Assembly (NCBI GenBank): GCA_964035545.1
Contig: OZ037773.1
Location: 4,121,751 to 4,185,750, forward strand
DNA length: 64,000 bases
Source of the DNA: Bugula neritina
Lineage: Eukaryota > Animalia > Bryozoa
Direction: 5' to 3'
This document shows positions 14,335 to 63,510 of the stretch, piece by piece. Numbering within the stretch: the first letter of the stretch is position 1; the number at the start of each line of letters is the position of its first letter. Below the pieces are notes generated by a model. That model saw nothing but the letters and a program-made list of their open reading frames with translations, had not been told where the DNA came from and searched no databases. Both the position numbers and the translations under genes were made by a program.

Positions 14335-14361
14335 CAGGACCTTTAACTACTCACTATCACT

Positions 14362-17300
14362 ATGATGTTATATCTCAGCTATCTGATGTGTTTGTTTACT
14401 TGTATTTCATGTGAGTAATGCTTCTCATTGTGTCTAATAAAATCAAGATGCAAATACATAATATAATTAGTAATTACTATTGGTTGTATTTGAGTGATAT
14501 ATCATAGGTTGTGTGTAAAAGTCTGTAATAAAGATAGTTTGCTTAAGACATACCTACTGTATGCATCAAAAACAGAAGATGACTGTGTATTTACAGGTGT
14601 TACATCTAGATTCTATTTTATTAAGTTACTGAGTAGGAGTCCATCACAGTGATATATGTACAGCTTGGGTGTTGTGTGCCAATCTGTATAAGCCCCTTAA
14701 CTTAGATATTAATTTGTACAGAAACCCAGGCCTTTATATTTGAGTTTCAGTGTGGTGGTGCTCCATAGTTCTGATAATTAGGTTGAACACTCACTATTAT
14801 ACCATAATAAATTATTTTTTGATGCTCTCCTTTAATTTCACAGTAACTATACATCAGGTGCCAATTGTTGCTGCTATCACAAAATTAAGGGAGCCACTTA
14901 AGTCTGGTGTATATATCTCATTATATCTAAAATTATATTACTCTTACTCAGGAAAGTCTAGTGTTATGAGTTTTGTTTTAAAATTATTCTATAAGCAGCT
15001 TCGAGTTGGTGGTGATTGAGTGCGGTACTAGTTGCCCCCCCCCACCCTCGGCATTTGGAGTTATTAACCCAAATTGGAGACCCTCTAAACTACTGCACTC
15101 ATTCACCCCTAACTCAGAGCTGCTTATAGAACCATTCTTAGTTTTACATGACTTCTAGATTTTGAGTCAAAACTTGCAGGAAGGTAATCCTGTTATAATA
15201 TAGTTATAAGTTGAGAGCATGGTCAATTGAAAAACTAATTTCTTTGGGGGAATCTTCCTTAAATAACCTATGTAATATTATAGATTTGTAAATAATATTT
15301 TTTAAAGTGTGTCAAAATCAATGTATAAATAACAAATCTTGAAAGTGGATGAATGCAATAAAAAAACGTGAGCCATTTATTAAGCATGCAATTAATCTAT
15401 GAAATCGATTGAACTGATGACCATAGAACGTTTCTATATTTAGCTCAACCAACCACAGAGATATCCTACGGTTCTCCGCCTGCAGCGTTTTATAAAGATA
15501 AAATGACATCACTAGTATGTAGCGCATCTGGTTTTACTGCTTTGAGAAACTTTCAGTTGCGGTACGAGGATGATGGACACGATGCAATCTATAGAAGTGG
15601 ATGTAGTACAAGTCCTGAGGATGACACAATGTGGGTTAGTGCATCAACACCAGCCATTGCAACTGCATCTGGGATAGAAGGACCCGTAGTTAGTCATGCA
15701 GATTGTGAATCAGTTGGTAGACCTGAGGGGTTCACTCTTACTGTGAGACTCGTGATAACTGATCCAGCCATTCAAGGAAAGTTTTACTGTCGAGGGTATG
15801 AAGGGGGCGGTGTGGGAGAAATTTTTTCCCAAGAGATATCAGTACAAGTGAAAGGTAATTTCTTTACCTTCTTTTGAACAAACAGTGTTTTATTGAAAAT
15901 GATCATAATTGATCAAACCTTCCCCATGCTGTGGAGAGTAACAAGGGTTCCTGAACACGTAACTTACCATGTTCCAGCTCCAGAGAGCAATGTTCACAAT
16001 TACATGGATGAGCTCATAAAGCGCATGAGGACGGCTCACTGTCAAATTTTCAGTTTCAAGCTTATATTCAAATGTTATTATAAGGATTGTCCTCTTTTGC
16101 AAGAATTAGTTTTTTGCTTTACAGTTGGTCCTCAAAGTTTGATTCTCAATGCATCTGATGCAGTAGAAGGTGAAGTTCTAAGCTTTAGTTGTGAGTCCAG
16201 AGATGCTAAGCCTATCTCAGTGTATGAGTACAGTAGGTACAAGGTGTACTATACATGTTTTAGTCTATTATATTATTAGCTAAGATTCCATTGTAACTGG
16301 CTCTGGTGCCGAATATTCTCTCCACATGTCTTAAATTTATACAATTTTTTGTTTTAATAAGTTTTGCATTTTTTATTGGCTGCAGCATAACAAACTTGTA
16401 GTGCTTTATACAACCATGGTATTGACATAAGCTCAGAGAACTATTTTCTATTCAATAATACAATGTTTCACTCATTTTCTTTTCTTATGCTTTCACTTTT
16501 TTTAATATAATGTACTTTCAGAAGTGAATAACCAGTCAGTCTCTCCGCCTACTTATACTCCTGAGAAAGCTGACAGAGATGGAGTGTTGATATCATGTAG
16601 AGATATTATTCATACAAACTGGAAAGATGGAAATACTGAAGCTTCAGTTTTGCTCAAGCCTAAATGTAAGTAATAATTTCTAAACCGATTTCAACTTGTA
16701 AACTAGGTACATAAAGCATTGACTCATAGACTTTGCATTTTTTTACATCTAGTGATATACAGAGAGTTGAATTGGTAGCTTCATTTTCACCAGTCGCTTA
16801 GGAATAAAATATCAGCTGTAGAAATTTTGCAAGTCAAGTTAAAACTCTGCTATTTTTTATTTTTGATCTTAGGAAATTTGCATTATTACATTTTATATGA
16901 TTGTAAATTCACTAAGAAGATTCAAAAATGCATTCTATGAATTTTGTTATTATTTTTGTTTTAAGCACAAAATGTTTTCATCTTTGATAATGCATGCAAA
17001 CCTCCATTTGTCAGTTATACTAAAATCTCCTACTGTTACATTATGTTTGTCATTATCATGTTTATAGACATCGATGTAAAATCAGAAGTAGAAAATCCAA
17101 CGACAATACAAGTGATTACTGAAGATGGTGATGTAGAACTAGACTGTGATCTACATGTTACAGGAAACCCAAAACCAACCATCTTCTTCTGGGTACGAAA
17201 CGGGACTGAACAATCAGAAGAGACAAATAACAAGTTACTCCTGACTGCACAGACTGCTGGTACAAAAGAAACAGTAATGTGTACTGCTGGAAATTCTCTG

Positions 17301-17815
17301 GGTTTGTCCTTTAAAATGTTGCATTACTTATAAATAAACTATGAAAAATTGATTAACTTATCACATTGGATTAACCATAGATATCATTATTGTGTTTCGT
17401 AAACTTGAAACCTGTTCCACTTGAGACGTAGAGATAACATACATAAAATATAGTCTACGAATTGTACATTTACATAGAAACAGCAAATCCTATTACAAAG
17501 TGTTAAATGGGTCATAAATTTCAAATTACATATTCAATATAATATATTGTATTATTGTACAACATTATTACTAATTAACATGTCATCTTATACAACAGTG
17601 ACTTCAGTAATAAAGAAGTAGCTGTCAAATAATATATACTATAATTATTTCACTATACAGGAAAGAATGTGACTGTAACATGGCATATAGAATGGGACAG
17701 CATTTCAGAAAAAAGTTCCAATGATGCTGAGACTAACTATCAAAGCAACTTGATGACTCCCTGGAGCCTATCAGTTATCATCTTCTCCTTTGCTTGGAAA
17801 TATTTTTTACCTTAG
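14362..17815 (+). CDS. Ig-superfamily cell-surface protein copy A (signal peptide, V-like, C2-like and I/C2 domains, GPI-type tail), 366 aa; exons 14362-14410, 15444-15854, 16125-16232, 16522-16665, 17068-17301, 17661-17815
   Basis: Leader MMLYLSYLMCLFTCISS; Ig cysteine motifs LVCSASG...GKFYCRG, FSCES...LISCR and LDC..VTGNPKP.IFFW...VMCTAGNSLG; hydrophobic C-terminus with no cytoplasmic tail. All introns are phase-1 GT-AG; 1101 nt open. Confidence 0.85.
14978..15138. mobile_element. Short foldback MITE in intron 1 of copy A (duplicate at 34178-34332 in copy D)
   Basis: ~50-bp inverted repeats: ttctataagcagct..gagttggtggtgattgagtgc / gcactcattcacc..aactcagagctgcttatagaa. Confidence 0.7.
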
Positions 17816-19952
17816 GTTTTTTTCTATATCTTTGATATATATGATAAGATGAGTTTAAAGAAGTTTTAGCATTTAATTTTCCAAATGTTATTGAAAATTT
17901 TTGTTAACCAAGTTAATGTAATTACGCTAAGCATGCAAGAACAAATACATAAATATAATATCAGTCATTTCGTTCTTGTAGAATTGTATGCAATCAGAAA
18001 TATAGAAACATATTACGTAACAGAGTGTAAACTTAGTAACCAGATACCATTGTTTTCGACAAGTCCTAATACATTTTTATAATAATCAAGTTATAAAAAG
18101 TCAGTTAAAACATTGATTTTGCCTGGTTTGTTCAATAATAACAATGGTATGTATATAACTACTGTAAGAAACCTCTTAACCTGTATATTGTTTATGAAAG
18201 GTTTGAGAAGTAGCGTTTGTAGAGAGCATTACTTCAGAATAATTACTGTGTACATAATAGAAACAAATATCCTAAACAGAGTTATGTGAACATCTCACAA
18301 TAGAATGATAGAGAAATAACTTTGCTTGTAAAGCATTCTCAACTATAACTCTAGGTCAGCATATAGGCTTGAGTAGTAATCGGTATAACTAACTTTAGTG
18401 CATTAGCTGCCAGAATAGAGTTACACTACAGTTTGAGAGTTGTAGGCATTTTGTAGGAGAGATGTATATGAGGTGCAGGTAGGCTGTTTACCTGCACTAA
18501 CACATGTGCTGGAGAAAAACTGGGACTGTATGGGAGGGCCTGAGTACTTTCTGGGGCTACCTGGGGTTACCCAGTGCTAACTGTTTTGAAAACATAATTT
18601 ACACATAATTTCAATCACTCATCAGTTATAAGATAATAATCAACATTATATCTTCAAAATATTTTTAAACGATTGCTATATATCTATGAACTGTTGATCA
18701 GCTTAGGTTATACTTATTTCTTTGCATTTCGCTGTTTTTAAATGATAAAACAAATTCTTCTCTAGTTTCTATTTTGGGTGCTGTTTAGTAAGCAGGTGAG
18801 AAAATAGTTTGCAAACCTGGTGAGAGACAAGTTTTCTCTGGTTCTATAGTAAAGTGTGAGTTGCTAAAATAGATCGAGTTTAATAATTAACTGGTGGTAA
18901 GTTTGATTGAACATTTTAAGCATTGAGGTTGACATTTCACTTTTTGAGCCTAAATAATTATTAATATTCTTTCAACTGATAAAAAATTTGTAATTTTCCT
19001 ACTACTCAACTTATTTAACAGTATAGGCATCAAGTAATCTGTCTATTTTAAAAAGTTATCACTATTAAAAGTTATTTCGTTAAAAGAGGTTAATTGCATG
19101 CAGGTTGTAGATTATAATATGAGTAAGCGTTTTTTCCACTTTTTACTGCAACTGAATGTTTTAGGAAGATGACTTGTACCTGGTTAACCACAGTTTTAGT
19201 GTTGGCTCTATCTCGCTACACACTTGGTATGTATATATTTCAGGTGTTTTTTTAGGTGTGTTGTAAGTTGTAGTAATTGAGAAGGCAACTTCGAGTCTTC
19301 CAAAATATTTATAAAACCACCAGTTTGATATAAATCTTGTGCTTACATACAGCTGTCAGTACAGTTTTGCAATAATTTTAAATTAAGTTTTAATACATGC
19401 ATGTTCAATAATTAGCTAGCGTTGAAGTATATTTAGATTATGTTTTTGGTATTTATTATAAAGTAAGCAAAATCAGTATTTAACAACAATTAAGCTAAGT
19501 TATTGGCATAGCCAGAAATACGTTATAGCAATGTATGTATTTATCTGTCTCAAAAACATTCATCATTTGAAAAGTACTGTTTATGTATTAATTGTTTATG
19601 ATTCACACGCTATATACCCTTGAATATTAACATAAATCTATATACAGAATCAAGGATGCTTAGACACCTACTATATATATAGGTACTAAAATTAGCATCA
19701 TTCAACTTACACTTTAGCAGTAGCTATATCAAACCTGACTCTCAACGAAATAGCTGTGTGCTAGTTTGCAATCAAGTGTTGTGTACATGCAGGTAAACAT
19801 CCGCAGAGGGTTTTGGACAGACATACTGTTTTATGTATTTAGCTGTTGCTACAATCAGTATATATTGTATTAAAAAATTAAACCTTCTGTATGGATTATT
19901 TTTACGTATAGCTTTTAGTGAAATGTTCAGATGGAAACTTTTTATTTTTTAG

Positions 19953-22660
19953 CACAGCCATCTGCAGAGATAGATTACACTTCTCTAAGCGCACCGGATA
20001 TGTATATAAATGAGAGGATATCTTTCAATTGCAAAGCATCTGGTTATGCTGACATGAGAAGCTTAAGGTTATTAAACGAGGTTGATGGAGACAACACTGT
20101 TTACAGAAGTGGATGCGTTCCAAGTTCTGAAAATGACACAGTATGGGTGAGCTTCTCAACACCAGATATTACAACTGTCTCTGGAGTAGAAGGACCTGGA
20201 GTCAGTGACGCATACTGTAGAGCAGTTGGCAGAGCTGAAGGGTTCGCTCTTTCTGTGACACTCAAGATGACTGATTCGACAATTAGAGGAAAGTTTTACT
20301 GCAGAGGATATGAAGGAAGAGGTGTGGGAGAAGTTGTTTCTCAAGAAATAATGGTAGAACTTAAAGGTATTTAATTAATTTTTTACACTTGGAAAAATTA
20401 AAATAAATGATAAAATATGACTAATTCATATTCAACAAAAATTAGTTCCCTAAGAAATTCAACCAAAGTAGGTTTTTACTGGGTTATTAAAACTTTACCC
20501 ATGGTGCACTATAAGCGTCCACATCACATGAGACATTTTTTCATGAACACTTTTCAACGCTTTTGTAAAAATCATAAGAAGTGGTCACAAAAAAGCAAGC
20601 TGCAATTTTTTGTGGAGCTCAATCATTGAATGGTGTATTAATTTGAGTTAGATCACCATAACTGAAAATAAATTTGATACGCAAAGGGGGGGGGGGTTTG
20701 AAAATGGAGAAATTGGACAAGTTGTGTCTCTATTAACAAAGTTTTAGCTTGTGGACGTCAAAGGTTTGTTTATTTATTATAAAACTATCTACTTTCATGC
20801 ATTAATAATTGTGTATTTGTTATACTTGTGCTGGAAATTGACTGCTTTGTAATGTTGAACTACTGAAAGCTAAAATGAAAGCTACTGTCAAATTTTCAGT
20901 TTTAGGCTTATATTCAAAAGTTATTAAAGATTGTCCTCTTTTGTAAGAGTTTGTTTTTTGCTTTACAGTTGGTCCTCAGAGTTTGAGTCTCAATGCATCT
21001 GATGCAGTAGAAGGTGAAGTTCTAAAGTTTAGTTGTGAGTCCAGAGATGCTAAGCCTATCTCAGTGTATGAGTACAGTAAGTACAAGGTGTACTCTACAT
21101 GATTTAGTTTGTTATATTATTAGCTATAGTTCAATTGTAACTGGCTCTGGTGCCGATTATTCTCTCCACATGTCTTAAATTCATACAACTTTTGTTTTAA
21201 TATGTTTTGCTTTTTTTATTGGCTGCAGCATAACAAACTTGTAGTGCTTTGTACAACCATGGTATTGATATAAGCTCAGAAAACTTTTTTTCTATCCAAT
21301 AATACAATGTTTCACTCATTTTCCTTTCTTATGCTTACACTTTTTTTAATATTATGTAATTTCAGAAGTGAATAACCAGTCAGTCTCTCAGTCTACCTAC
21401 ACTCCTGAGAAAACTGACAGAGATGGAGTGTTGATATCATGTAGAGATATTATTCATACAAACTGGAAAGATGGAAATACTAAAGCTTCAGTTTTGCTCA
21501 AGCCTAAATGTAAGTAATAATTTCTAAACCGATTTCAACCTGTAAACTAGGTACATAAAGCATTGACTCATAGACTTTGCATTTTTTACATTTAGTAATA
21601 TACAGAGAGTTCAATTGGTACCTTCATTTTTACCAGTTGCTTAGGAATAAAATATCAGCTGTAGAAATTTTGTAAGCCAAGTTAAAACTCTGCTATTTTT
21701 TATTTTTGTTCTTAAGAAATTTGCATTATTACATTTTATATGATTGTAAATTCACTAAGAAGATTTAAAAATGCATTCTATGAATTTCTTTTATTATTTT
21801 TGTTTTAAACACAAAATGTTTTCATCTTTGATAATGCATGCAAACCTCCATTTGTCAGTTATACTGATATCTCCTACTGTTACATTATGTTTTTCATTAT
21901 CATGTTTATAGACATTGATGTAAAATCAGAAGTAGAAAATCCAACGACAATACAAGTGATTACTGAAGATGGTGATGTAGAACTAGACTGTGATCTACAT
22001 GTTACAGGAAACCCAAAACCAACCATCTTTTTCTGGGTACGAAACGGGACAGAACAATCAGAAGAGACGAATAACAAGTTACTCCTGACTGCACAGACTG
22101 CTGGTACCAAAGAAACAGTGATGTGTACTGCTGGAAATTCTCTGGGTTTGTCCTTTAAAATGTTGCATTACTTATAAATAAACTATGAAAATTAAATAAC
22201 TTATCAGATTGGATTAACCATATATATCATTACTGTGTTTCGTAAACTTGAAACCTGTTCCACTTGAGACGTAGAGATAACATACATAAAATATAGTCTA
22301 CGAATTGTGCATTTACGTAGAAACAGCGAATCTTATTACAAAGGGGTTACTGGGTCATAAATTTCAAATTACATATTCAACATATTATATTGAATTATTG
22401 TACAACATTATTACTAATTATCATGTCATCTTATACAACAGTGACTTTAGTAATAAAGAAGTAGCTGTCAAATAGTATATACTTTAATAATTCACTATAA
22501 CACAGGAAAGAATGTGACTGTAACATGGCATATAGAATGGAACAGCATTTCAGAAAAAAGTTCCAATGATGCTGAGACTAACTATCAAAGCAACTTGATG
22601 ACTCCCTGCAGTTTATCAGTTATCATCTTCTCCTTCGCTTGGAAATATTTTTTACCTTAG
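19953..22660 (+). CDS. Ig copy B; exons 19953-20366, 20969-21076, 21366-21509, 21912-22145, 22506-22660; leader-like exon (~19736-19792) lacks ATG and contains an in-frame TAG
   Basis: Five open phase-1 exons paralogous to copy A. The start codon could not be identified, so this may be a pseudogene. Confidence 0.7.
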
Positions 22661-24822
22661 GTTTTTTTCTATATCTATGATATATATGAAAAGATGAGTT
22701 TAAAAAAGTTTTACCATTTAAATTTCCAAACTTGTTGAAGGTTTTTCTTAACTAAGTTAATGTAATTACACTAAGCAAGAACAAATACATAGATATAATA
22801 CCAGTCATTTCGTTCTTGTAGAATTGTATGCGATCAGAAATATAGCAACATATTACGTAACAGAGTGTAAACTTAGTAACCAGATACCATTGTTTTTGAC
22901 AAGTCCTACTACATTTTTATAATAATCAAGTTATAAAAAGTCAGTTAAAACATTGATTTTGCCTGGTTTGTTCAATAATAACAATGGTATGTATATAACT
23001 ACTGTAAGAAACCTCTTAACCTGTATATTGTTTTTGAAAGGTTTGAGAAGTAGCGTTTGTAGAGAGCATATCCTCAGAATCACTACTGTGTGTATAGAAG
23101 CAAAATTCCTAAACAGAGTCATGAGAACATCTCACAATAGAATGATAGTGAATAACTTTACTTGTAAAGCATTCTCAACTATAACTCTAGATCAGCATAT
23201 AGGCTTGAGTAGTAATTAGTATAACTAACTTTAGTGCATTAGCTGCCAGAATAGAGTTACACTACAGTTTGAGAGTTGTAAGAATTTTATAGCAGATACA
23301 TATGAGGTGCAGGTAGGCTGTTCACCTGCACTAACACGTGTATTAGAGAGAAACTGAGACTGTATGGGAGGGCCTGAGTACTTTCTGGGGCTACCTGGGC
23401 TTACCCAGTGCTAATTGTTTTGGAAACATAATTTAAACATAATTTCAATCACTCATCAGTTATAAGATAACAATCAACATTATATCTTCAAAATATTTTT
23501 AAATGATTGTTGATACATTTTTCTACATATTACACAACAATACACAGTGTGTTTTAATTTGGTATATATCTATGAGCTGTTGCTCAGCTCAAGTTATACT
23601 TATTTCTTTGTATTTCGCTGTTTTCAACTGATAAAACAATTTCTTCTCCAGTCTCTACTTCGGACACTGTTTAGTAAGCAGGTGAGAAGTTAATTTGTAA
23701 ACCTAATGAGAGACAAGTTTTCTCTGGCTTTATAGTAAAGTGTGAGTTGCTAAAACAGAGTTTAATAATCAACTGGTGGTAATTTTGAATGAATATTTCA
23801 AGCATTGAGGTTGACATTTGACTTTTTGAGCCTAAATAATTATTAATATTCTTTCAACTGATAAAAAGTTTGTAGTTTTCCTACTACTCAACTTATTTAA
23901 CAGTATAGGTATTAGGTAATCTGTCTATTTTAAAAAGTTATCACTATTAAAAGTTATTTCGTTGAAAGAAGTTAATTGCATGCAGGTTGTAGATTATAGT
24001 ATGAGTAAGGGTTTTTTCCACTTTTCACTGCAACTTAATGTTTTAGGAAGATGACTTGTACCTGGTTAACCACAGTTTTAGTGTTAGTTCTATCTTGCTA
24101 CACACTTGGTATGTATATATTTCAGGTGTTTCTTTAGGTGTGTTGTAAGTTGTAGTAATTGAGAAGGCAACTCCAAGTCTTACAAAATATTTATAAGACC
24201 ACCAGTTTGATATAAATCTTATGCTTACATACAGCTGTCAGTACAGTTTTGCAATAATTTTAAATTAAATTCTAATACATGCATGTTTAATAATTAGCTA
24301 ACGTTAAAGTATATTTAGATTATAGTTTTGGTATTTATTATAAAGTAAACAAAATCAGTATTTAACAACAAGCTAAGTTTTTGGCATCGTCAGAAATACG
24401 TTATAGCAAAGTATGTATTTATGTGTCTCAAAAACATTGATCATTTGAAAAGTACTGTTTACGTATTAATTGTTAATTATTCACACGCTAAATACCCTTG
24501 GATATAACATAAATCTATATACAGAATCAAGGATGTTTAGACACCTACTCTATATATAGGTACTAAAATTAGCATCATTCAACTTGCACTTTAGCAGTAG
24601 CTATATCAAACCTGACTCTCAACAGAATAGCTGTGCTAGTTTGCAATAAAGTGTTGTGTATAGGTAAACATCCGCATATGGATTTGGACAGACACACTGC
24701 TTTATGTATTTAGCTGTTGCAACACTCAGTATGTATATGTTATATTTAAAAATAAGTCTTCTGTATGGATGATTCCTACATAGCTCTTAGTGAAATGTCT
24801 GATGGAAACTTTTTATGTTTAG

Positions 24823-27729
24823 CACAGCCATCTGCAGAGATAGATTACACTTCTGTAAGCGCACCGGATATGTATATAAATGAGAGGATAACTTTCAATT
24901 GCAAAGCATCTGGTTATGCTGACCTGAGAAGCTTAAGGTTATCATACGAGGTTGATGGAGACAACACCGTTTACAGAAGTGGGTGTATTCCAAATACTGA
25001 AGATAACACAGTGTGGCAAGGTTCATCAACACCAGATATTACAACTGTCTCTGGAGTAGAAGGACCTAAAGTCAGTAACGCATACTGTAGAGCAGTTGGC
25101 AGAGCTGAAGGGTTCACTATTTCTGTGACAATCAAGATGACTGATCCGACAATTAGAGGAAAGTTTTACTGCAGAGGATTCGAAGGAAGAGGTGTGGGAG
25201 AAGTTGTTTCTCAAGAAATATTGGTAGAACTTAAAGGTATTTAATTAATTTTTTACACCTGGAAAAATTAAGATAAATGATAAAAGATGACTAATTCATA
25301 CTCAACAAAAAATAGTTTCCTAAGCAATTCAACCAAAGTATAAGTTTTTACTGGGTTATTACAACTTTACCCATGGTGCACTATAAGTGTCCACATCACA
25401 TGAGACATCTTTCCATGAATACTTTTTAATAAACTCACGCAAGTTTATAGTCGCTATCCCTGTGAGAAACCCCTGTTGGAAAGGTTTTTTATTAAAACGG
25501 GTTAAGAACTTGTTTAAATGAGGCACAGGAGCAATTATGACTGGATGCTCTTCCTAACATCACCAATGGCCTTTGTCTGGGCTCGAACCCATGACCTTGG
25601 TGTTTACTAGGCAAACGCTCTAACCCTTAGACCACGGCTGCTTCATGAATACTTTTTAATGCATTTGTAAAAATCATAAGAAGCAGTCACAAAAAAGCAA
25701 ACTGCAAATTTTTGTGGAACGCAATCATTGAATGATGTATTAATTTGAGTTAGATGACCATAACTGAAAATAAATTTGATATGCAAAAGGGGGGGGGGAG
25801 TTTGAAAATGGAGAATTTGGAGAAATTGTGTCTCCTACAAAGTTTGAGCTTGTAGACGTCAAAGGTTTGTTTATTTAGTATAAAACTATCTACTTCCATG
25901 ATTCTTTAGTAATTGTGTATTTATTATACGTGTGCTCTAAATTGACTGCTTTGTAATGTTGAACAACTAGAAGCTAAAATAAAAGCCACTGGTAAATTTT
26001 CAGTTTTATGCTTATGTTCAGAAGATATTAAGGATTGTCATTTTTTGTAACAGTTAGTTTTTTGCTTTACAGTTGGTCCTCAAAGTTTGATTCTCAATGC
26101 ATCTGATGCAGTAGAAGGTGAAGTTCTAAGCTTTAGTTGCGAGTCCAGAGATGCTAAGCCTATCTCAGTGTATGAGTACAGTAAGTACAAGGTGTACTAT
26201 ACATGTTTTAGTCTATTATATTATTAGCTAAAATTCAATTGTAACTGGCTTTGGTGCCGATTATTCTCTCCACATATTATCTTAAATTCATACAACTTTT
26301 GTTTTAACAGGTTTTGCTTTTTTATTGGCTGCAGCATAACAAACTTGTAGTGCTTTATACAACCATGGTATTGATATAAGCTCAGAGAACTCTTTTCTAT
26401 TCAATAATACAATGTTTCACTCATTTTCCTTTCTTATGCTTTCACTTTTTTTAATATTATGTAATTTCAGAAGTGAATAACCAGTCAGTCTCTCAGCCTA
26501 CCTATACTCCTGAGAAAGCTGACAGAGATGGAGTGTTGATGTCATGTAGAGATATTATTCATACAAACTGGAAAAATGGAAATACTGAAGCTTCAGTTTT
26601 GCTCAAGCCTAAATGTAAGTAATAATTTCTATACCTATATCAACTTGTACACTAGGTACATAAAGCATTGACTCATAGACTTTGCATTTTTTACATTTAG
26701 TGATATACAGAGAGTTGAATTGGTACCTTCATACTCACCAGTTGCTTATGATTAAATATCAGCTGTAGAGGTTTTGCAAGTCAATTTGAAACTCTGCTAT
26801 TTTTTATTTTTGAACTTAGGAATTTTGCATTTGCATTTTAAATGATTGTAAATTCACTAATAAGATTTAAAAATGCATTCTATAAACTTTTTATTATTTT
26901 TGGCTTAAACACAAAATGTTTTCATCATTGATAATGCATGCAAACCTCCATTTGTCAGTTATACTAAAATCTCCCACTGTTACATTAGGTTTGTCATTAT
27001 CATGTTTATAGACATCGATGTAAAATCAGAAGTAGAAAATCCAATGACAATACAAGTGATTACTGAAGATGGCGCTGTAGAACTAGACTGTGATCTACAT
27101 GTTACAGGAAACCCATAACCAACCATCTTTTTCTGGGTACGAAACGGGACTGAACAATCAGAAGAGACAAATAACAAGTTACTCTTGACTGCACAGACTG
27201 CTGGTACCAAAGAAACAGTGATGTGTACTGCTGGAAATTCTCTGGGTTTGTCCTTTAAAATGTTGCATTACTTAAAAATAAATCATGAAAAATTATTTAA
27301 TTTTTTATATCGGATTAACCATAGATATCATTACTGTGTTTCGTAAACTTGAAACCTGTTCCACTTGAGACGTAGAGATAACATACATAAATTATAGTCT
27401 ACGGATTGTACATTTACATAGAAACAGCAAATCCTATTACAAAGAATTCAATATAATATATTGAATTAGTGTACAACATTATTACTAATTACCATGTCAT
27501 CTTATACAACAGTGACTTCAGTATTAAGGAAGTAGCTGTCAAATAATATATACTATAATTATTTCACTATACAGGGAAGAATGTGACTGTAACATGGCAT
27601 ATAGAATGGGACAGCATTTCAGAACAAAGTTCCAATGATGCTGAGACTAACTATCAAACCAACTTGATGACTCCCTGCAGTTTATCAGTTATCATCTTCT
27701 CCTTCGCTTGGAAATATTTTTTACCTTAG
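24823..27729 (+). pseudogene. Ig copy C with a premature stop in domain 3; exons 24823-25236, 26073-26180, 26471-26614, 27012-27245, 27575-27729
   Basis: GNP-AAA changed to TAA at 27116-27118. The leader-like exon is open and in phase but has no ATG. Confidence 0.75.
25431..25643 (-). mobile_element. tRNA-derived SINE (tRNA-Thr(AGT)-like head) in intron 2 of copy C
   Basis: 17-bp TSD catgaatactttttaat (25414-25430 and 25644-25660). The minus strand has A box TGGTCTAAGGG, B box GGTTCGAGCCC and the loop ctAGTaa. The site is empty in paralogues B and E. Confidence 0.88.
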
Positions 27730-31484: not shown

Positions 31485-31890
31485 GTGAGTCACATTGTTA
31501 TATATTTTGTGGTAGATAACTCCTAAGTGAGTCACATTGTTATATATTTTGTGGTAGACAATTGCCAAATGAGTCCCATTGTTATATATCTTGTGGTAGA
31601 CAATTCCCAAATGAGTCACATTGTTATATATCTTGTGGTAGACAATTCCTAAGTGAGTCACATTGTTATATATCTTGTGGTAGACAACTCCTAAGTGAGT
31701 GACATTGTTATATATTTTGTGGTAGACAACTCCTAAGTGAGTCACATTGTTATATATTTTGTGGTAGACAACTCCCAAATGAGCCACATTGTTTTATATT
31801 TTGTGGTAGACAACTCCTAAGTGAGTCACATTGTATATATCTTGTGGTAGACAACTCCCAAATCAGTCACATTGTTATATATCTTGTGAT
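31466..31890. repeat. 42-bp minisatellite, 10 copies (2 copies at ~12939-13028)
   Basis: Unit gtggtagacaactcctaagtgagtcacattgttatatatttt, with 42-bp spacing (31471, 31513, 31555...31848). Confidence 0.93.
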
Positions 31891-53000: not shown

Positions 53001-56000
53001 GTGAATCTACCACCCACCTCTCCACCAAGCTGTACTCCTTCTGTTCAAGAAGATAACAGCAGGCCATCGCGGGAAACCGCGATGGGAAGCCCTCTAGAGA
53101 GCCCGTCTCCGGGGCGAAGGACTGCCTCACCCCACGCCCCACACAGCCAAGGGACTCATGGGAGAGAATCAGACGGTTGCGTAGATAACGAGAAGCGCCA
53201 AGAGACGGCCACGTTACTACACAAAACCGAGGCTACACCTCACCTTGGGGATCCTGACATGCCCCCAGAGGCGGCACAGGACCTCCACGCCGAACCCGTC
53301 TCAGCCGATGGCGTCAAGGAGCTACGACACCTCCAGGAACAGATTCCGGGGGTGGTAGCCGACGTCTATCAAATTAAACGGGAAGGGCGACGACCCAGTG
53401 ACAAACAACGGAAGCAGGGCTGCGCCGAGTGGCAGCTGTACTGCCGACGTTGGAACGCACTGCGGATCGAGCCGGATGGTCTATTGACCATATCTTTGGC
53501 CGCTAACCACCACCAGCCAGACCAGGAGAGAACTCTCTGTCCTGCCGCCATCCGCTGAGAGTTGATAGAAGAGGTACACCAACAGGCTCACTGGGGAGCC
53601 CAACAGGTGCTCACCGAACTACAACTCTGGTAGTATTGGCCTAACATGAAGCGTGAAGTACGGCGCAGAGTTAGGCAGTGCGGAGTCTGCCGGGCCAGTA
53701 AGCACGGCCGCCCTCCTGACAAGGTGGGGCGGCGAAGGCAAAGTGCAGACAGACCCGGGCAGACGGAGACTGCTGACCTGGTCAACAAACCGCCCAGGAT
53801 GCAACCCAAAGCAGTGGCGAGGCAGAAAAAACCACACCCGTTCAGGGAAGTGCGCTCACCGCCTCCAGCGTACAAGCTGCCGCCACCACTTCCTAAGTTA
53901 GGAACCGACCGGGAAGTGCAAAACCCCCCCACTGGAGGGGCTCCGTACGGAGATTCTAGGAAAGCTCCATTTGTCATAAACTGGCTGGAGGCACCACCCG
54001 TGAGACGTGACCGTCCACGGGTGAGTAAACCGCCTTGGTTGGTGACGACACCTCGGAAACGGTGTTCTAGACCAACCCCCGCGTATCTCAAGGACTTACC
54101 ACGTGCCGTTCAGGGCGCGGTCAAACGTCCCACGAGGCACCGTACGGGGAAGAGAGCAAGGTGTGGGAGTTGTGAACACCACGAGAATATCAACTTTTGC
54201 TTCGGCGGAATCTCAAACGAGATTCATACGCCGGAAGTAATTAGCCCTAGCCACGTTTCACAACCACGCTGCTCGCTCTTTCATCACATTGATACAGCTT
54301 TGAGTAGACGTACGTAGAAATCATAAACATACCACTCTCATTCATAATGGCTTGCCAAGAATCGAGAGGTGAGTTAGTTATGTTTTTGGTACGAGGACTA
54401 AACTGTATTAATCAGCTTAACTGTAACAGAATAAGCTGGAGACTCGGTAATGATTTTTAGTGGTGGGAATTCACATTGACTCTAAGACTGAACAGTCTGT
54501 TACAGCAGTGTGTGTTTTCGATCAACTATTCATTAGCTGAGTCTCACAAGTGTCTAATTGAGTTAAGTACCCACCAGGCTGTATACGCCGGTTGTACTCA
54601 GTGTACCCTCTTACACTGTTATACTCTTGCAGATCACACTCAATTGACCAACTCCGGGTCACAAGATCTACACCCCCTCTCCTCCTTGGACAACAGACCG
54701 GAAACGGACAACGGACTGCCCGTGGCACTGCGTCGAAGACATAAATAGGTGTCACGACGTACGGAGCGGCAAATTGAAGAAGCCTGGGGACCAAGTGGCT
54801 CACAACGAACCTGCCATGTGTGTTATGAGGAGCTGCCCTCGCACCAAGGACTACGGCTGCATGTAAATGCACACTTCCTATTACGCTTTTTTGCTTTCTT
54901 GTGTGTTCTCCAAACTAAAAGAACCACTATGAACTTAACCATCCTTTCATCTATTTCACGGTCTGTCTCTCTAACACCACTGATATCATGGATATCATTT
55001 TCATCTTTTTTCCTGGTGAATGCTTGATGTAATGCAGCTTAAATGGAAAACACATCCAGGTGACTTGGTGATGTTACTTGTAACTAAAGGCGGTTTTTTT
55101 TATTTCAAATCTGTACAGAGAACAAAGAGCAAGCAATGGTTCCGGCAGCCAATTTGAATAGCCTGAACCCTTCTGATTCTGAATCCCAACCCACTAGTTC
55201 AGTTTGGGAATCTAAATTACTATCAAACTTTGAGGGTTTTGCCATGTAAAAACTGAGTATAGTGCCTGTAACATATTTCTATTTATATTTTCCTAATTAG
55301 TATCAACATTGTCAATAATTGTGTTTTTGATGATTTAATTTTTTCATGGTTGCCTTTATTGAACTATGTATAGGTTTTATAAGTTTCATATTCATATTTA
55401 ACAATTTCAATAATTTTGAATAGATGTTTTTTAATTAATATTTAATTTTCTCTTCACTACTGTGCTTTAACTTATGCTACATATGTATGCACATTGTGAT
55501 AAAGTTGAATAATAAAGTCAATTATGATAAGAAGGCTAAAATGAATTTATTAATCATCTCACAGATCACACTGCATGCAAATACACAAATACTAACTTCA
55601 TAGCCATCTTTAATGGACAAAGGTGAGCTATAGGGTCATAGTGGCAGACAACAGAGCCACGAGTCAGTAACCATGTGTATACAGAACATACAGTGTTACT
55701 AGAGCATATCATATAACAGCTTACCTGTAGGAGTATATGCAGTTCATAACAATATTTACATACACATTCTAGTAAACTAAATCTGATTGATCTTGAAGTA
55801 AATTACAAAAAATGTATAATTTAATACTTTTTGTATTTTCAAATGCATATACATTGTTTGTAGAAAATATTGTACTTTAACAACTGATTCACAAATTTTT
55901 AACCAATTGCAGTTCACATTTATTCTTTAGCTAGTACAGCCAATGTTTTCAGACTATCCCCCTCCCCGTATTCACACGTTAGTATCCTATGTCGTAACTG

Positions 56001-59000
56001 CAAATTTTAGCCATTTTTGTCAACATTTGGGCTGAGTCATATCTCGGTATATGTTGCGGCTTTATTATTTTGGAACATACAAGGGAAGGATTTTAAATAT
56101 GTTTGATAAGAACAGCTGATAATGAGAGAATGACTCCTAATTGACACCAATATTGTGTAATCTATAAAATTATTATTTGCAAACAATATAAAATCAAATA
56201 TATAACAATGTTGCATTGTTGAATATTTTAAAAAAAAAATTTCTTATGATTCCATACATTCTTTACATCACAAAACAAAACAGCTTCATAGACATCACAA
56301 AATTAAGTTTCTTCTATAAAAGTCTCTAGATTCTAAATAACTCTAAGTTAGATACTCATCTACTACTGTATATAGGCAGGACCTTTAACTACTCACAATT
56401 ACTATGATGTTATATCTCAGCTATCTGATGTGTTTGTTTATCCGTATTTCCGGTATGTGATGTTTTACAGTACTTATCGAACTCAAAATACAAATATAAC
56501 AAAATGATTATGCAATCATATTTTAGAAAATACATTACAGCCAATTTGCGTTAATGATAGTTTTTCTAATGCAAACAATAAACAAAATAGCTGCAAAATT
56601 AGTGAATGTAAGTCTAAGATGTCTCATCTAGAGTTTATTTACCAAACCACTGAGTAGAAGCTTACCATAGAAACTCACACAGCGTTATAGATTATTTGTA
56701 CCAATCAATGATGTTTCTTCTATGGAGTTGGTCATGATGTAGGTTCCAAGTTTAATATTTCCATGTGTACAAAAAGTAAAGCTAGAAAGGCTTCAGATTT
56801 TAGTTTGACCAATAGGATAAATGCATTATATTACACCCTAATGCAATTTTTATCAATGCTTTGTTTATTTCTTTTCTATGTTATACAAAACAACATCAAA
56901 ACACTGTTGCCACCGCTATAACATATAAAAGCAGCAAAACACTGTATATTTATCTCATGACTTTACCTTTATTATTTTCTTCAGTTAGGATTGTCAATCT
57001 GCGTAGGTTTTATTCAATATCTTTATAGTAAGTTTTATGATGTCTTGCAAAAAAAAGGCAACATGCAGTAGTGGACAGTTATATAGAAAACTACTTTAAA
57101 AATAATAAACTGTAAATAATTTTTACATTCAGCTAAACCATCTGCACTCATAGACTACAATCCTGGGAATGGACCAGAGGTATATAAAGATAAGAATATA
57201 GCTGTATTCTGTGTGGCATCTGGCTATACGGATTTGAGAAGCTTACAGCTACAATATCAATCTGATATAGAAGACAAGGTTTACAGCACTGGATGTACTC
57301 GAAGTAGTGGAGATGACACTGTGTGGGTTGCTTCATCAACCCCAGACATAGCTACGATACCTGGTATAAAAAGACTTGGCATTAGTGATGCAGACTGTGG
57401 ATATGCTAGCGAGTCTGATGTATTATCTTTTCTTTTTCAATTCACAATAACTGAGTCAACAACTGGAGGGAGTTTTTCCTGTAAAGGGGTTGAAGGAGGT
57501 GCCGGAGAAATTTCTTCCTCAGAAGTACCAGTAGATGTCAAAGGTCATTATTTTCAAGTTTTAGTTGAAACAAGCAATGGGTATAAAAAAGGATTATGAA
57601 TGATGTATTACGCAAGCATTCAAATTTCATAAAACAAGTGCTTTCTTGACTCTTTACATAAAAATTTCCATTGGGTTAATTTATTTAATATAAAGAAAAG
57701 CTTTGTAATGTTTAATAAATTGTCGCATACAGTGTTGTTTGTTAAGGCAAATATTTCTAATTTATGAAATATTACTTGAAAGAAACTTAAAAATATTTTA
57801 ACAGACCATTGATGCAGTCAATGTATTCTAAATTTGTCAAGCTTTAAGGCGCAATAAAGATCTTTTTTAAAAACCACATGTTCTACAGTTTCCACCTGAA
57901 TAAATGCAACCATATGTTTTTTTGTGGAAATCAATCATCGAATGAGTTCGGTTGTTGCAAAGAAGATCAAGGTTTGCAATTTGAACTGCCAAAGCTAAAA
58001 CTACAATTTTGACATTCATCTGATCGCTATTTAAAATTGCTAATCTTTTAAATTTTTGCTTTACAGTTGGTCCTCCGAGTTTGATTCTTAATGCATCTGA
58101 TGCAGTAGAAGGTGAAGTTCTAAACTTTAGCTGTGAGTCCAGAGATGCTAAGCCTGTCTCAGAATATGAGTACAGTAAGTAGAAGGTTTTTTACGTTTTT
58201 ATTCTATTGTATCAAATTGACCGAAATAATTTGGCTACATATTTATATAAGTTTTTTACTATATAATTGTCTGCTCCCACCATCAACAGAAAAACTGTTG
58301 AAAACTAGCACTAAAACAAATAAAATTTTGTTGAGCGTGTTAGTCTAATGTTGCGCATTTATGCATTCACAACTTTTAGTCAAAATATATACATTTGACC
58401 TAGTTGAAATTTGCATTGTAAAAGCCACTGTCAAAATTGCTGTACCGTGTGATTAATTAATCAGCCTATATCAGATTAATAATCAAAAGAACTAATAACT
58501 CAGCGTAGATATGAGTATTTGATCATTACTTTGTATATAATCATATGAGCAACATTTTCACGATTATACTTTCTCTTTTATGCTGTCAACCTTTTGAAGG
58601 GGCATCAACTATCAATTGAGTGAGTCGTGTTTCACTATTAGAAAATCAGTTTCCGCATCAATATGATTTTAACGAGTTTTAGTAAAACTATGAAGGGGTA
58701 ATATTGTAGTGGGCAGTAGAGCGTAAGGCCACGCGCTCACTAACCACTCATCATTAAAACACGTGATTACCCTCCCCCCTCGGCAAAGTAGAAAGGCTTC
58801 AGGACATGGTGAAAACGGTCACTGCAATCATACCTCGGCCAGACAACACCCCCATGGAAGCATCAGACTCTCCAGAAGAAGCGACGCCAACTCCAACCAA
58901 GCCTAACCGACTAGCAACTGTTGAGGAAAGACTCCTACGACTGCAGGATGAATTCACCCAATTGGCCCCCGACTTACTCAGCACTACAATGAGCCTTAGT

Positions 59001-61205
59001 GAACTAAAGGGCTCAGTGGGACGCCTTAAGCGTAGATTACGTGCACGGCAAGCACGACACCGGATCCAGTCCCTGCAAAACTAGAAGCTGGAAGTGGACA
59101 ATTCCACCCCGCATATCCTCGGGGTACTACATTGTGATCGTGTAAATGCTTGATCTGTTAACGACCAATCTGTGTAATGATCCAGATCTCTCTCTCTGTA
59201 GCTGGCCAGCTGTGTGTTGGCCGTCTCTTTATCTTACTTATCTATATGTCGTACGTTTGATATTTCTTTTCTTTTACTTTGTGGATTTTCCTTACTTATG
59301 TCATTTTTGCATTATTATACTATTTTGTTTTATCAGAAAGTGGGGCTTTCTGCTTGTGGGGGCGGTGTAATGGGATTAGGTAGTATAATAATGGGGTCGT
59401 CCCCTCCTATATGGAATACTTATAACTATGTTCTACTATCCAATCAGAGGGACCGGAAGACAAGGTTCCGGTCAAGTGACTGTGCGCGGGTTAGCTAGCG
59501 GAAACCATGCGTTGTTGAGAGCAGGGACTCGTAGTAGTAACATGTGTTTATAATTGATTGATGTATTTTGGTATTCTGATATAATGTTATAATTATGTTT
59601 ATCGAGTTAAATAAAGGTTATCGTGCAAGCTCTATTAGTAGTTGCTAGTTAAATTGACATTAAATATGCAGGCAATCCACGCTTGAGAATTGTGCTAAAA
59701 CTCACAACATTATGAATTATTGCATTAAGTTATTTCCTAGGCAGCAAATATTGGCATCAAAAACCATTTATTTCTTTGGTCAAAAAACACAACCTCTAAA
59801 CGCATGCATCTTTTTATCAGTATATCTGTATCCAGTGAAGTATTTGTTAGAAATAACAATTTCTCTCATTTTCCAGTAAATAAGCAATGCTGCTTATTTC
59901 AAATATAGTGTTACTATAAGTGACTGTGTTGCTTTTGATTTACATATGTTATGTCCACTTGCAAAAGTAAAGCACTTGATCCTAAACTAAAAGTAGAAGA
60001 TAGAAGTGAACAACTTTAAAACAGTTGGTCATTGCTATTGATTTTAAAGTTGAGTGTTTTTTTAACTGCATTCAACCAATCTCTTGAATCTTGAAGGTGC
60101 TGTTAAAACTAAATTATTTTTCATCTGATGAAAGTTGAGTAAAATAATTATTACATGGTGCCGCTTAGATCATCTGGTATTTCTCAGAGTGTATTGTATA
60201 ATATGAGCATTGATAGAATGCTGCTAGTTTCTCCTATTGCAGATAGTATATGTAGCATGTGACATCCTATATAATAGTACCCTTACGAACTAGTTAGTGT
60301 AAAAGATATCACGACAAGCTATATATTCCATTAGATAGTATCATACAAGATTATGTAGTTTAGTTATCTCTCTACAGAGAAGGATGTGACTGTATCCATG
60401 AATACGGAATCCAACGGCGTGACAGCTGTAACAGGTAGGAGATTTATAACTTTACAGCCTAATTACAAATTTTCACCCTGTTGAAAGTCTATAAAGCATT
60501 GCATTAAGTTTTCTCCTATAAGCAGTAAATATTGGCATCAAAAATAATTTATTTCTTTGGTAAAAAAGCACAACCTCTAAACGCATCTTTTCATCAGTAT
60601 ATCTGTATTCAATGAAATATTTGCAAGAAATAACAATTTCTGTTACTGTCCAGTAAATAAGCAATGCTGTTTATCTCAAATATAGTGTTACTATAAGTGA
60701 CTGTGTTGCTTTTGATTTACATATGTTATGTTCACTTGCAAAAGCAAAGCACTCAATTGTAAACAAAGGGTAGAGAAGAGAAGTACGCTAATTTACAGCA
60801 ACTTTTCATCGCCACCAATTCCAAAGTTGAGATCTTTTTAACTGCATTTAATCAATCAGTCTTCTTGAGCTGCTGTGAAAACTAAATATTCTTTAATCTA
60901 ATGAAAGTTGAGTAAGAAATTGACTGACCAAACTTTATATAGGCAGTGAGAAAAATTTGTAATTGTATTTTCAAGTTATAGCCAAATAGCAACCGAGTTT
61001 TTGGACAATTATCATGCGATATAATCAAGTTAAAAAAATATTACTTTATATCTGTCTTCTCGGCTTTGCAGAAAAACGTCTGAATTTATCAACAGAAATC
61101 AAAGAGCAAGTTGATAGCGAGAATAAATCTCAAAGCAACCTGATGGCAGGCTACAGCTTGTTATCTATCATCATCCTATTCCTTTGGAACTGTATTTTAA
61201 TCTAA
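44076..61205 (+). CDS. Ig copy F (third V subfamily, stalked form); exons 44076-44486, 45015-45122, 49412-49555, 49773-50006, 50360-50416, 50709-50765, 60378-60434, 61072-61205; own leader exon missing
   Basis: All exons are open and phase 1, including three 57-nt stalk exons and the terminal EKRLNLSTEIKEQVDSENKSQSNLMAGYSLLSIIILFLWNCILI*. Large TE insertions lie in two introns. Confidence 0.65.
46323..49370 (+). mobile_element. 3.05-kb TIR DNA element with a decayed XPG/PIN-like nuclease plus Cys-rich ORF
   Basis: Perfect 18-bp TIR tagtctagaagtaacctc / gaggttacttctagacta, with a subterminal inverted ggtggccac. Remnant peptides are YEEADTKTLLHA (~47399), FHASTGCDS (~48093), LPPTKDELYLHIKRANY (~48352) and a Cys-rich tail (~48530-48610). 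Confidence 0.8.
50828..51173 (+). repeat. 5' LTR (346 bp)
   Basis: Direct repeat of 59366-59709, with about 8 substitutions and one 2-bp indel. Confidence 0.95.
51175..51192 (+). promoter_or_regulatory. Primer-binding site complementary to the tRNA-Leu 3' end
   Basis: TGGTGGCAGCGGTGGGAT is the reverse complement of ATCCCACCGCTGCCACCA and begins 1 nt after the LTR end. Confidence 0.88.
51208..52143 (+). CDS. gag: Gag (capsid-like plus CCHC zinc knuckle), 311 aa, intact
   Basis: VPTFSG..VEQF...F...W capsid-like start and CWECGRPGHFQKHC knuckle, directly after the PBS. Confidence 0.9.
   Translation: MTERGTELPIRRNKCEEDNVAIPIEPEVRVHRECYEEKYWLRVPTFSGEEPVEQFVQEFQDVMKVAQWPPRIALLKLWMALSDKAKPYGVEPDIDGIFASLRARFGISAVDARARLQRLRRDPHTPLQEHATTVMRLAQIAFRDLPQVNRERYTYDAFMQSINDLGLLHQLLARGVTTVEGALAEREAYLLASQLHRNRVTSRQVDMEPSAAPTASNAKTPAVAKVTQMTVASKVTQMTDMLAKLVSALAPLSQLDTTRELDGPLVQSPGRGHPSCWECGRPGHFQKHCPRLQPGLNYDDSRMLPHPAGRR
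52092..53760 (+). pseudogene. pol: Degenerate pol: aspartic protease and integrase Zn-binding remnant; no RT, RNase H or integrase core recognisable
   Basis: FLLDTGCTTN...DAILGMPFL with an in-frame TAG at 52635-52637; EVHQQAHWG...VRQCGVCRASK with stops. It is in the -1 frame relative to gag. Confidence 0.85.
54885..58806 (+). repeat. 3.9-kb host segment inside the LTR element; its first 462 bp match 63539-64000
   Basis: Abrupt switch from GC-rich to AT-rich sequence. 54885-55346 and 63539-64000 show no difference that I could see, and 56920-58806 is paralogous to 43865-45780. Confidence 0.93.
56404..58174 (+). CDS. Ig copy G, 5' part only (leader 56404-56452, V exon 57133-57543, exon 58067-58174), nested in the LTR element
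   Basis: TATA box, leader MMLYLSYLMCLFIRIS and an open F-type V exon (weak donor gtcatt), truncated in intron 3 at ~58806. Confidence 0.75.
59366..59709 (+). repeat. 3' LTR (344 bp)
   Basis: Preceded by the PPT-like gtgggggcgg and followed by TSD TTAT. Confidence 0.95.
60165..60920 (+). repeat. Second copy of a ~0.75-kb intron/stalk-exon tandem duplication (first copy 50493-50827 plus 59714-60160)
   Basis: ttagatcatctgg...tgctgctagtttctcctattgcagatag...exon...ttgcattaagtt...gttgagtaa is repeated. Confidence 0.85.
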
Positions 61206-62454: not shown

Positions 62455-62605
<151 letters not shown>

Positions 62606-63117
62606 TGTGTGTTAAAGACACACAGCTGCCTGCTAAAAAGTCAGTTACAAGTCACAAAAAAGCCGGACGAATACTTTGAGATTGGAACACATACTAAAAG
62701 TATTAAAAACTGAAATTGAAACAACTTGTAAACCTTTGAACCAAAATTGGTTTAATTTTGATTAAACAAGTAGTTTAAGGTAATGTTTTTACTATTTGGC
62801 ACTCATCCAGTTGATTTTGATGATATTTTCTGATACAGAAGAAGTTATATCAATTCGAGCAGACGCCAAATAATCAAACAATCATCTACCTAAAATAGAC
62901 ACAAGGACTACAAAATAAACCTGCATGGAAACATAGCGGAGAAAAAGGAAAATGGGACTAAACGCATTAAAGTGTCAAAAACTCTGGCTATTGTTTTAGT
63001 GGGGCAAAGTGACAGATATAAAGTGAAAGCTTATACAATTGGCTAAAAAGTTGTACTAGAATTTCATACATGGCACGGCATAAAAATACAGAGCTTACTC
63101 GAGAAAACTTCCACATT

Positions 63118-63510
63118 TTAACTTCTGCAGATATACTTCTGAAAACTAAACTTTTCCCCCATCTCCTCCTTCAAATCCTCTAAAGTAAAACTTCCTTCTG
63201 TTTGCAATTGATTTAAGTACAGTTAGTTAATGTAGAGAAAAAATAAATCTTTCACATCTACTAACTATTTCATTACTGGTTGCAGGTCCTTCTATACCAG
63301 AGACAGTAACGATGTCGTTAGTTTATGAACTTTCAGATATTTCTTTCTTTCAAATCCACAACTGTATATTGCATTGTCTCTTTATCAGCTTGATATTGTA
63401 TCTGTAAGATTATCAGCTCTGACATCTATTAGATAATTAGTGATTTGTATATACATCTGATGAACTCAGAAAACTGCATGTCATATTTGTAAATGTTTAT
63501 CTGTGATTAT
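63118..63510 (-). pseudogene. Decayed, inverted V-exon relic of the Ig family (copy H)
   Basis: The reverse complement contains ttacagatacaatatcaagctgataaag (LQ.QYQ.DK), gacatcgttactgtctctggtatagaaggacct (DIVTVSGIEGP) and gaagttttactttagaggatttgaaggagga (KFYFRGFEGG, with the second canonical Cys lost), plus frameshifts. Boundaries are approximate. Confidence 0.8.

Follow-up and report, generated by a model that had tools for sequence, protein, structure and literature searches.

A tandem cluster of tailless Ig-superfamily genes with a cryptic V-set domain in Bugula neritina: a candidate recognition locus

What do the clustered immunoglobulin (Ig)-type genes on contig OZ037773.1 of the bryozoan Bugula neritina (assembly GCA_964035545.1) encode, and how can copies that are nearly alike in their 3' halves carry such different V exons? 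The window, meaning the whole stretch of 64,000 nucleotides that was analyzed, is AT-rich animal DNA (about 31% GC) and spans positions 4121751-4185750 of this contig, called C9 in the following, in an assembly of 216 Mb. Searches by tblastn and blastn with the exons of copy A placed the array between 14.3 and 63.5 kb and detected seven forward V-type exons (A-G) and one inverted relic (H); the first C2 exon was found seven times and each remaining constant exon six times. The V exons form three subfamilies, A/D, B/C/E and F/G, which, together with the relic, had already been recognized in an earlier reading made from the letters alone (the sequence-only reading). Our analysis suggests, with moderate confidence, that the locus is a tandem cluster of paralogous, lineage-specific Ig-superfamily (IgSF) surface-protein genes, shaped by gene conversion or unequal crossing-over, whose products may be the non-signalling or co-receptor counterparts of paralogues with tails of the ITIM type (ITIM, tyrosine-based inhibitory motif of immunoreceptors). 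The V exons are located as follows:

15444-15854, 19953-20366 and 24823-25236, forward strand: V exons A, B and C
34637-35044, 39171-39584, 44076-44486 and 57133-57543, forward strand: V exons D, E, F and G

Gene models were built independently from splice consensus and homology. In the models of A to F all introns are of the GT-AG type and in phase 1, and the predicted layout comprises a leader, the V domain, a split C2 domain, a third Ig domain and a hydrophobic C-terminus. These models agree with the leader-V-C2-I/C2-hydrophobic tail architecture with only phase-1 introns that had been proposed before, and the model of copy A gives a protein identical to the 366-aa product proposed there. 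The reading frames of A, B, D, E and F are open, with lengths of 365-381 aa, and each of the seven forward V exons is open, with four cysteines common to all. The models are:

14362-17815, forward strand: gene A, six exons (14362-14410, 15444-15854, 16125-16232, 16522-16665, 17068-17301, 17661-17815), open, 366 aa, leader type 1, A/D-type V
19169-22660, forward strand: gene B, six exons (19169-19226, 19953-20366, 20969-21076, 21366-21509, 21912-22145, 22506-22660), open, 370 aa, leader type 2, B/C/E-type V
24051-27729, forward strand: gene C, six-exon structure as in B (24051-24108, 24823-25236, 26073-26180, 26471-26614, 27012-27245, 27575-27729), one nonsense codon
33566-37004, forward strand: gene D, six exons (33566-33614, 34637-35044, 35313-35420, 35710-35853, 36257-36490, 36850-37004), open, 365 aa, leader type 1, A/D-type V
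38398-41875, forward strand: gene E, six exons (38398-38455, 39171-39584, 40185-40292, 40580-40723, 41125-41358, 41721-41875), open, 370 aa, leader type 2, B/C/E-type V
43262-61205, forward strand: gene F, seven exons (43262-43319, 44076-44486, 45015-45122, 49412-49555, 49773-50006, 50360-50416, 61072-61205), leader type 2, F/G-type V, own tail

The introns of A to E are 268-1033 nt long, and the models place no additional coding exon in them. The 381-aa frame of F is open if two transposon-swollen introns, intron 3 with 4289 nt and the last intron with 10655 nt, are spliced. In gene C the AAA codon of A, B, D and E is replaced by TAA at 27116-27118; C is a probable pseudogene. Two leader exons occur in the array, both hydrophobic and both ending at a phase-1 GT donor: type 1 (MMLYLSYLMCLFTCIS) belongs to A, D and G, and type 2 (MTCTWLTTVLVLALSRYTL) to B, C, E and F. 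The copy states described earlier held for the intact copies (A, B, D and E, and F if spliced), the nonsense copy C, the nested copy G and the inverted copy H. A leaderless copy was not found, since each of the seven forward copies carries one of the two leader exons.

The V exon, which encodes the first Ig domain, gave no match in Pfam at E-values up to 1. In an alignment of 33 V sequences, C53 and C87 are invariant, C25 and C115 are present in at least 90% of the rows, and L38 and W63 are conserved; the canonical tryptophan of strand C is absent, with Leu or Tyr (L38) in its place and the conserved Trp at 63. The AlphaFold2 model based on this alignment (predicted local distance difference test score, pLDDT, 94.6; predicted TM-score, pTM, 0.89) has strands at residues 3-8, 20-28, 33-42, 47-55, 63-65, 97-104, 111-119 and 124-127, with C25 on strand B, C115 on strand F, and predicted disulfides C25-C115 and C53-C87. 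A Foldseek search of the PDB with this model retrieved only antibody heavy-chain V (VH) and nanobody domains (E about 1e-5, TM 0.55-0.6), and an exhaustive VIA search retrieved T-cell receptor (TCR) V domains, CD8, nectin-3 D1 (Z 9.0) and MPZ, with Z 9-10; all top matches of both searches are V domains. The V sequence profile matched only antibody V regions (V-kappa) and JAM among all PDB chains, and these weakly (E at least 0.01). Because the predicted fold and the structural matches stand against absent or weak sequence matches, domain 1 is predicted to be a V-set Ig domain missed by sequence profiles, and the earlier V-type call is borne out by fold prediction, Foldseek and VIA alike.

Exon 5 matched Pfam Ig_3 with an E-value of 5.9e-6 (27.1 bits, under the 30-bit cut-off) and Ig_2 likewise below threshold; it also matched contactin-5 (E 1.1e-7) and the Ig domains of Robo, neurofascin and CADM. 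Domain 2, encoded by exons 3 and 4, gave a weak alignment over its full length with one C2 repeat in a siglec-like protein. At the C-terminus the models end in 16-17 hydrophobic residues preceded by small polar residues, with a short stalk upstream, and have no cytoplasmic tail, as had been noted earlier. The last residues before the stop codon are ...SSNDAETNYQSNLMTP-WSLSVIIFSFAWKYFLP in A-E and ...SQSNLMAGY-SLLSIIILFLWNCILI in F. By inspection, this C-terminus, with small residues at a candidate omega site 8-12 residues upstream, looks like a glycosylphosphatidylinositol (GPI) signal, and none of the gene models of this cluster has an ITIM-type cytoplasmic tail.

Comparison of the copies revealed two very different degrees of divergence within the same genes. 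The V domains share 81-91% amino-acid identity within subfamilies and 40-62% between them, compared to 77-96% between subfamilies for the constant part. As whole units, A and D are 93.5% and B, C and E 89-93% identical. A and B are 93.7% identical, introns included, over a stretch that begins 87 nt before exon 3 and extends 750 nt beyond the stop codon; upstream of this homologous 3' block only the V exon aligns, with 74.5% identity. Between subfamilies the synonymous divergence (dS) was 0.63-0.84 for the V exons versus 0.09-0.17 for the constant exons (Fisher p 1e-6 to 1e-10 for the synonymous differences). Since the V exons thus exceed the constant exons by far in dS, they are for the most part old lineages on a homogenised 3' half and not recent, fast-diverged duplicates. 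A birth-and-death array with a variable distal domain had been postulated; the duplications and losses described below and the contrast between V and constant parts are in line with this. In a tree of the V exons A/D is sister to B/C/E, and F/G forms a separate clade. Despite this two-clade tree, a single origin of the cluster V exons was not rejected by the approximately unbiased (AU) test (p 0.5), and import of V exons from other clusters is not claimed.

The constant exons are under purifying selection, because their ratio of non-synonymous to synonymous divergence (dN/dS; window pairs, NG86 method) was 0.08-0.44. For the V exons the ratio was 0.42-0.91 within subfamilies, pN/pS was 0.58 over 235 close family pairs, and a parsimony counting test with 37 V exons gave a dN/dS of about 0.62 and a nominal excess only at sites 54, 97 and 110, with 22 non-synonymous changes versus one synonymous change at site 54. 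No positively selected V site survived multiple testing in pairwise NG86 comparisons, sliding windows or parsimony counting. The description of the array as "diversifying" therefore does not hold as it was worded, with a family-wide ratio of about 0.6, and diversifying selection on the V exons is weakly supported. Variability peaks at residues 54-57, 64-72, 84-88 and 9-12, a pattern in line with a conserved core around which evolution is relaxed or locally diversifying.

The growth of the cluster can be followed in a segmental duplication, whose two copies are:

13430-24655, forward strand: copy 1, comprising A, B and the 5' part of C
32624-43864, forward strand: copy 2, comprising D, E and the 5' part of F

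They are joined by one colinear alignment of 11.3 kb with 92.4% identity, by which D, E and the 5' part of F are recognised as duplicates of A, B and the 5' part of C. Its end lies some 170 nt upstream of the V exons in C and F. Because it does not reach the V exon, gene F is a chimera with a C-like promoter, leader and intron 1 and a V exon of the F/G type. Leader types are shuffled relative to V types. Two further features are situated between the duplicated blocks or at the start of the second one:

28138-28836, reverse strand: retroelement fragment between the blocks, with integrase zinc-binding-like open reading frames (ORFs; weak Integrase_H2C2 match)
29966-32698, no strand assigned: minisatellites with periods of 15, 24, 42 and 57, upstream of gene D (Tandem Repeats Finder)

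The retroelement fragment has a GC content of 41% compared to about 31% in its surroundings. The stretch 31802-32371 is 92.9% identical to 12939-13506 upstream of A, and since the distal part of the minisatellite tract (from about 31802) lies within it, the tract belongs to the upstream region of the duplicated unit.

Copies are also eroded by transposon insertion and nonsense mutation. The features concerned are:

46322-49368, no strand assigned: insertion of about 3 kb in intron 3 of F, where the colinear alignment of F with its paralogue G' breaks; absent from G'
50828-59709, forward strand: degenerate retroelement in the last intron of F, flanked by long terminal repeats (LTRs; 50828-51173 and 59366-59709, 97% alike)
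54885-58807, forward strand: segment within the LTR element that carries fragment G
56404-56452, 57133-57543 and 58067-58174, forward strand: leader, V exon and exon 3 of fragment G; exons 4-6 are absent
63117-63361 (approximately), reverse strand: relic H, an inverted V-exon remnant with three stops (one TAG, two TAA)

The LTR element retains remnants of a gag zinc knuckle and an aspartyl protease and reaches a GC content of 60%. The 3.9 kb from 54885 to 58807 are 99.975% identical (about one base different) to the 5' part of G', a complete gene beyond the window, the twin segment running from 63539 to 67461 in window numbering; the V exon of fragment G is identical to the copy at C9:4187539. 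These twins might have arisen through capture or conversion in the very recent past, or they might be a duplication made by the assembly. A separate observation concerns the 3' end of the genes: the last exon of A-E (in A, 17661-17815) corresponds to a fusion of the last two exons of F (50360-50416 and 61072-61205) and of G', and it contains a relic acceptor, TTTCAG, inside the coding sequence (DSISE). Here an intron was lost by deletion in a gene family that is still young.

The genome contains at least 85 matches to the V exons of this family, most of them on C9, where they cluster at 0.03-1.09, 3.07-3.25 and 4.13-4.21 Mb. Two genes of the second cluster, located at 3.08 and 3.20 Mb, share the V, third-Ig and G-strand exons of the present genes, and the one at 3.20 Mb shares the split C2 exons, too. 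Both continue with a transmembrane (TM) segment and a cytoplasmic exon with the motifs SPYPEI, SPYTEV, SPYTEL and SLYTEL, i.e., a repeated S-x-Y-x-x-L/I/V pattern that is ITIM-like. Their constant exons are 37-47% identical to those of A. The remaining genes of the present cluster, including G' and an inverted gene at 4.204 Mb, are all tailless, and the cluster is the tailless, GPI-signal-like branch of the family. Within the cytoplasmic exons of the TM paralogues (C9:3.086 and 3.197 Mb), the repeat TDNSPYTE(L/M/V)S occurs three to five times in tandem, and the tails end in QTYVNI(R/K)S, which adds a YxN motif to the ITIM-like ones. A different arrangement was seen at C9:3157930-3161753 (reverse strand), where about 11 V-type exons or fragments, several with stops, follow each other at distances of about 450-500 nt. 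Unlike the V-C2-C2 units elsewhere, this run could be a tandem array of V exons only or a gene with multiple V domains.

Outside this genome, 29 matches were obtained when a V-domain profile was scanned against 1.84 billion protein representatives. Of these, 27 were ORFs between 49 and 228 aa in length; the other two, with 748 and 1113 aa, are unrelated proteins that matched weakly, one being a siglec-like protein of fish. Ten of the 29 were looked up, and all were ORFs from metagenomes or run assemblies without a name. On one metagenome contig the first C2 exon comes after a V exon, as here, and the exon end is the same; the family, of which no annotation was seen, is evidently present in related organisms. 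Searches of the ESM Atlas by shape and by features retrieved generic Ig-like neighbours only. Because only 29 relatives were found and the ten looked up had no name, the family looks like an undescribed, lineage-specific IgSF family, which agrees with the earlier statement that the proteins were not recognized as any named family and may form such a family.

These results can be combined into the following explanation. Each protein would consist of a signal peptide, a cryptic V-set domain, a C2 domain encoded by two exons, an I/C2-type third domain, a stalk and a hydrophobic C-terminus. The cluster grows by segmental duplication, namely of an 11.3-kb block with two and a half genes and of the near-identical 3.9-kb copy, with breakpoints in intron 1 giving rise to chimeric genes. 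Between subfamilies the 3' half, including its introns, has been kept about 94% alike, and three old lineages of V exons have been retained; gene conversion or unequal crossing-over that halts before the V exon would account for this homogenisation. The proteins are presumably located on the cell surface and may bind ligands via the V domain. Most likely they would act as non-signalling or co-receptor partners of the ITIM-type paralogues, in an arrangement resembling the paired receptors of immune systems. A recognition function, immune or allorecognition, is plausible, and the TM paralogues with ITIM-like tails favour the immune-type reading. A more specific proposal, which we regard as possible but tentative, is a paired-receptor system of protostomes in which a cryptic V-set domain is shared by ITIM-tailed TM receptors and GPI-linked tailless partners encoded in separate clusters of one chromosome, and in which different ligands maintain the V lineages against gene conversion.

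Several observations weigh against our explanation. ITIM-like tails were read in only two genes, both of another cluster; splice sites, leaders and the GPI reading come from sequence inspection only; and neither AATAAA nor ATTAAA was found within 600 nt after the stop codons of A, B and D. Moreover, the FG loop of the V domain (residues 116-125, the position of complementarity-determining region 3) is nearly invariant, and such a loop together with a V dN/dS below 1 suits a diversified binding site no better, and perhaps less well, than a conserved one. The same conservation, which extends to much of the V framework, would suit GPI-linked three-Ig adhesion or cell-identity molecules of the nervous system or of epithelia with IgLON/DIP-like homophilic or heterophilic Ig1-Ig1 binding and no role in immunity. 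Three Ig domains with a GPI-like tail and the similarity of the third domain to contactin, Robo, neurofascin and CADM point in this direction, too. We nevertheless consider such a role unlikely, as none of the PDB structures matched by the V profile is an IgLON, DIP or Dpr protein, antibody V regions with E-values of at least 0.01 being the best matches, and as at least 85 V exons in tandem arrays with many relics and pseudogenes and with ITIM-like paralogues are a profile characteristic of multigene families of the immune type. An allorecognition or self-marker locus with homophilic V domains that are highly polymorphic between individuals, like Alr1 and Alr2 of Hydractinia, would likewise explain a tandem IgSF family with a Pfam-invisible V-set domain, pseudogenes and relatives of the ITIM type, features that have been described for the Alr complex, too (PMC9546547), and a small changeable patch at V residues 54-57 with the excess at site 54 could be its trace. 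We judge this very unlikely, since no V site passed multiple testing and the 29 matches of the representative scan revealed no sequence relation to Alr. Paralogue-derived and allelic contigs are indistinguishable in the single sequencing run that a search retrieved for the locus, which over 14300-20299 proved to consist of DNA unitigs free of joints.

Alternatively, the array might be mostly decaying and non-functional, consisting of unexpressed remnants of a duplication burst whose frames are open only because they are young. The nonsense codon of C, the fragment G, the relic H, the intron insertions of 3 kb and 8.9 kb in F and the missing canonical poly(A) signals could be taken as signs of such decay. 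The constant-exon dN/dS stands against this, given a neutral intron divergence of 6-8%, and V exons that are separated by a dS of 0.6-0.8, but are all open and keep four invariant cysteines, would not be expected without selection, which makes general decay highly improbable. We give hardly any credence to a partial assembly artefact, in which A-B-C and D-E-F would be divergent haplotypes placed in tandem, or G and G' a false duplication. The similar spacing of the genes (4807 and 4882 nt versus 4832 and 4864 nt), the single colinear 11.3-kb alignment and the difference of about one base in 3.9 kb between the G segment and its twin would agree with it. However, the two blocks have diverged by 7.6% and their distal ends differ, as C continues into a V exon of the B/C/E type and F into one of the F/G type; between the blocks there are unrelated repeats and a retroelement fragment; many such tandem clusters of the family exist elsewhere in the genome; and a sequencing run contained perfect-match contigs for the copy-specific parts of A and B.

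Among known systems, the closest parallels to the tandem cluster proposed here are the paired Ig receptor clusters of vertebrates, treated below, and the Alr complex of Hydractinia, a clustered IgSF family with pseudogenes, Pfam-invisible V-set domains revealed by AlphaFold and ITIM-bearing relatives (Huene et al., 2022; PMC9546547). Both are large clustered families of surface proteins with pseudogenes, in which a distal V-set domain that escapes Pfam is followed by I/C2-type domains, and both have ITIM relatives. In contrast to Alr, to which a sequence relation is undetectable, the V domain described here has four cysteines and the proteins have a GPI-like end instead of a TM segment and tail; the host is a protostome-type invertebrate by its mitochondrial code, and the Bugula cluster is known from sequence alone.

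KIR, LILR, SIRP, CD300 and the NITR of fish are likewise tandem families formed by duplication and loss, with ITIM-tailed and tailless members that have similar ectodomains and with exon or domain shuffling and gene conversion between paralogues; this is an analogy only and implies no orthology. Activating partners typically have a charged TM residue and a short tail, which are absent from the tailless forms found here, as these look GPI-linked. The IgLON and Drosophila DIP proteins share three Ig domains, a GPI anchor (here GPI-like by sequence) and many paralogues, but have three Pfam-recognised I-set domains and serve conserved neural adhesion, whereas domain 1 of the present family is a divergent V-set domain without a sequence match to IgLON or DIP. 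Membership in the IgLON/DIP/Dpr group was rejected, as none of these appeared in the PDB search with the V profile or in the scan of 1.84 billion representatives. FREP or VCBP membership was rejected as well, because the complete models of six or seven exons lack a fibrinogen or chitin-binding domain. Nectins have the same V-C2-C2 order, and nectin-3 D1 was among the structural matches, but they are conserved one-to-one TM proteins whose tail binds afadin, and any other V domain gives a structural match at least as good; membership was rejected, as the cluster proteins have no cytoplasmic tail and no match to nectins at the sequence level.

A hallmark of innate immune recognition in vertebrates is the occurrence of V-set Ig families that comprise both inhibitory and tailless partners. 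To our knowledge, such V-set receptor families have so far been documented among non-bilaterians in Hydractinia. With a large, unannotated family of the same kind in an invertebrate of the protostome type, such systems would be known from a wider range of animals, and a paired-receptor system, if it exists here, would be an independent or ancestral counterpart of the KIR, LILR and SIRP logic. The locus adds another V-set domain that sequence profiles appear to miss, provides a clean natural example of homogenised constant exons next to V exons that are kept apart, and illustrates how duplication breakpoints and transposons produce chimeric receptor genes. We regard it as a well-described candidate, not as a demonstrated recognition system.

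With respect to the host, the mitochondrial COX1 gene (contig C321) has AGA at conserved Ser positions and uses ATA for Met and TGA for Trp. This codon use appears to be that of the invertebrate mitochondrial code, not of the ascidian or cnidarian one, and for this reason the host is taken to be of the protostome type and neither a tunicate nor a cnidarian. The motif FPRLNN would suggest a lophotrochozoan. A nuclear COX1 copy at C6:11174072-11175412, nearly as good as that on C321 and with nine TGA codons, is apparently a recent mitochondrial insertion into the chromosome. Directly upstream of the array, an exon of a mitoguardin (Miga) gene was identified at 11221-11556 on the forward strand (Pfam Miga, E 1.3e-32).

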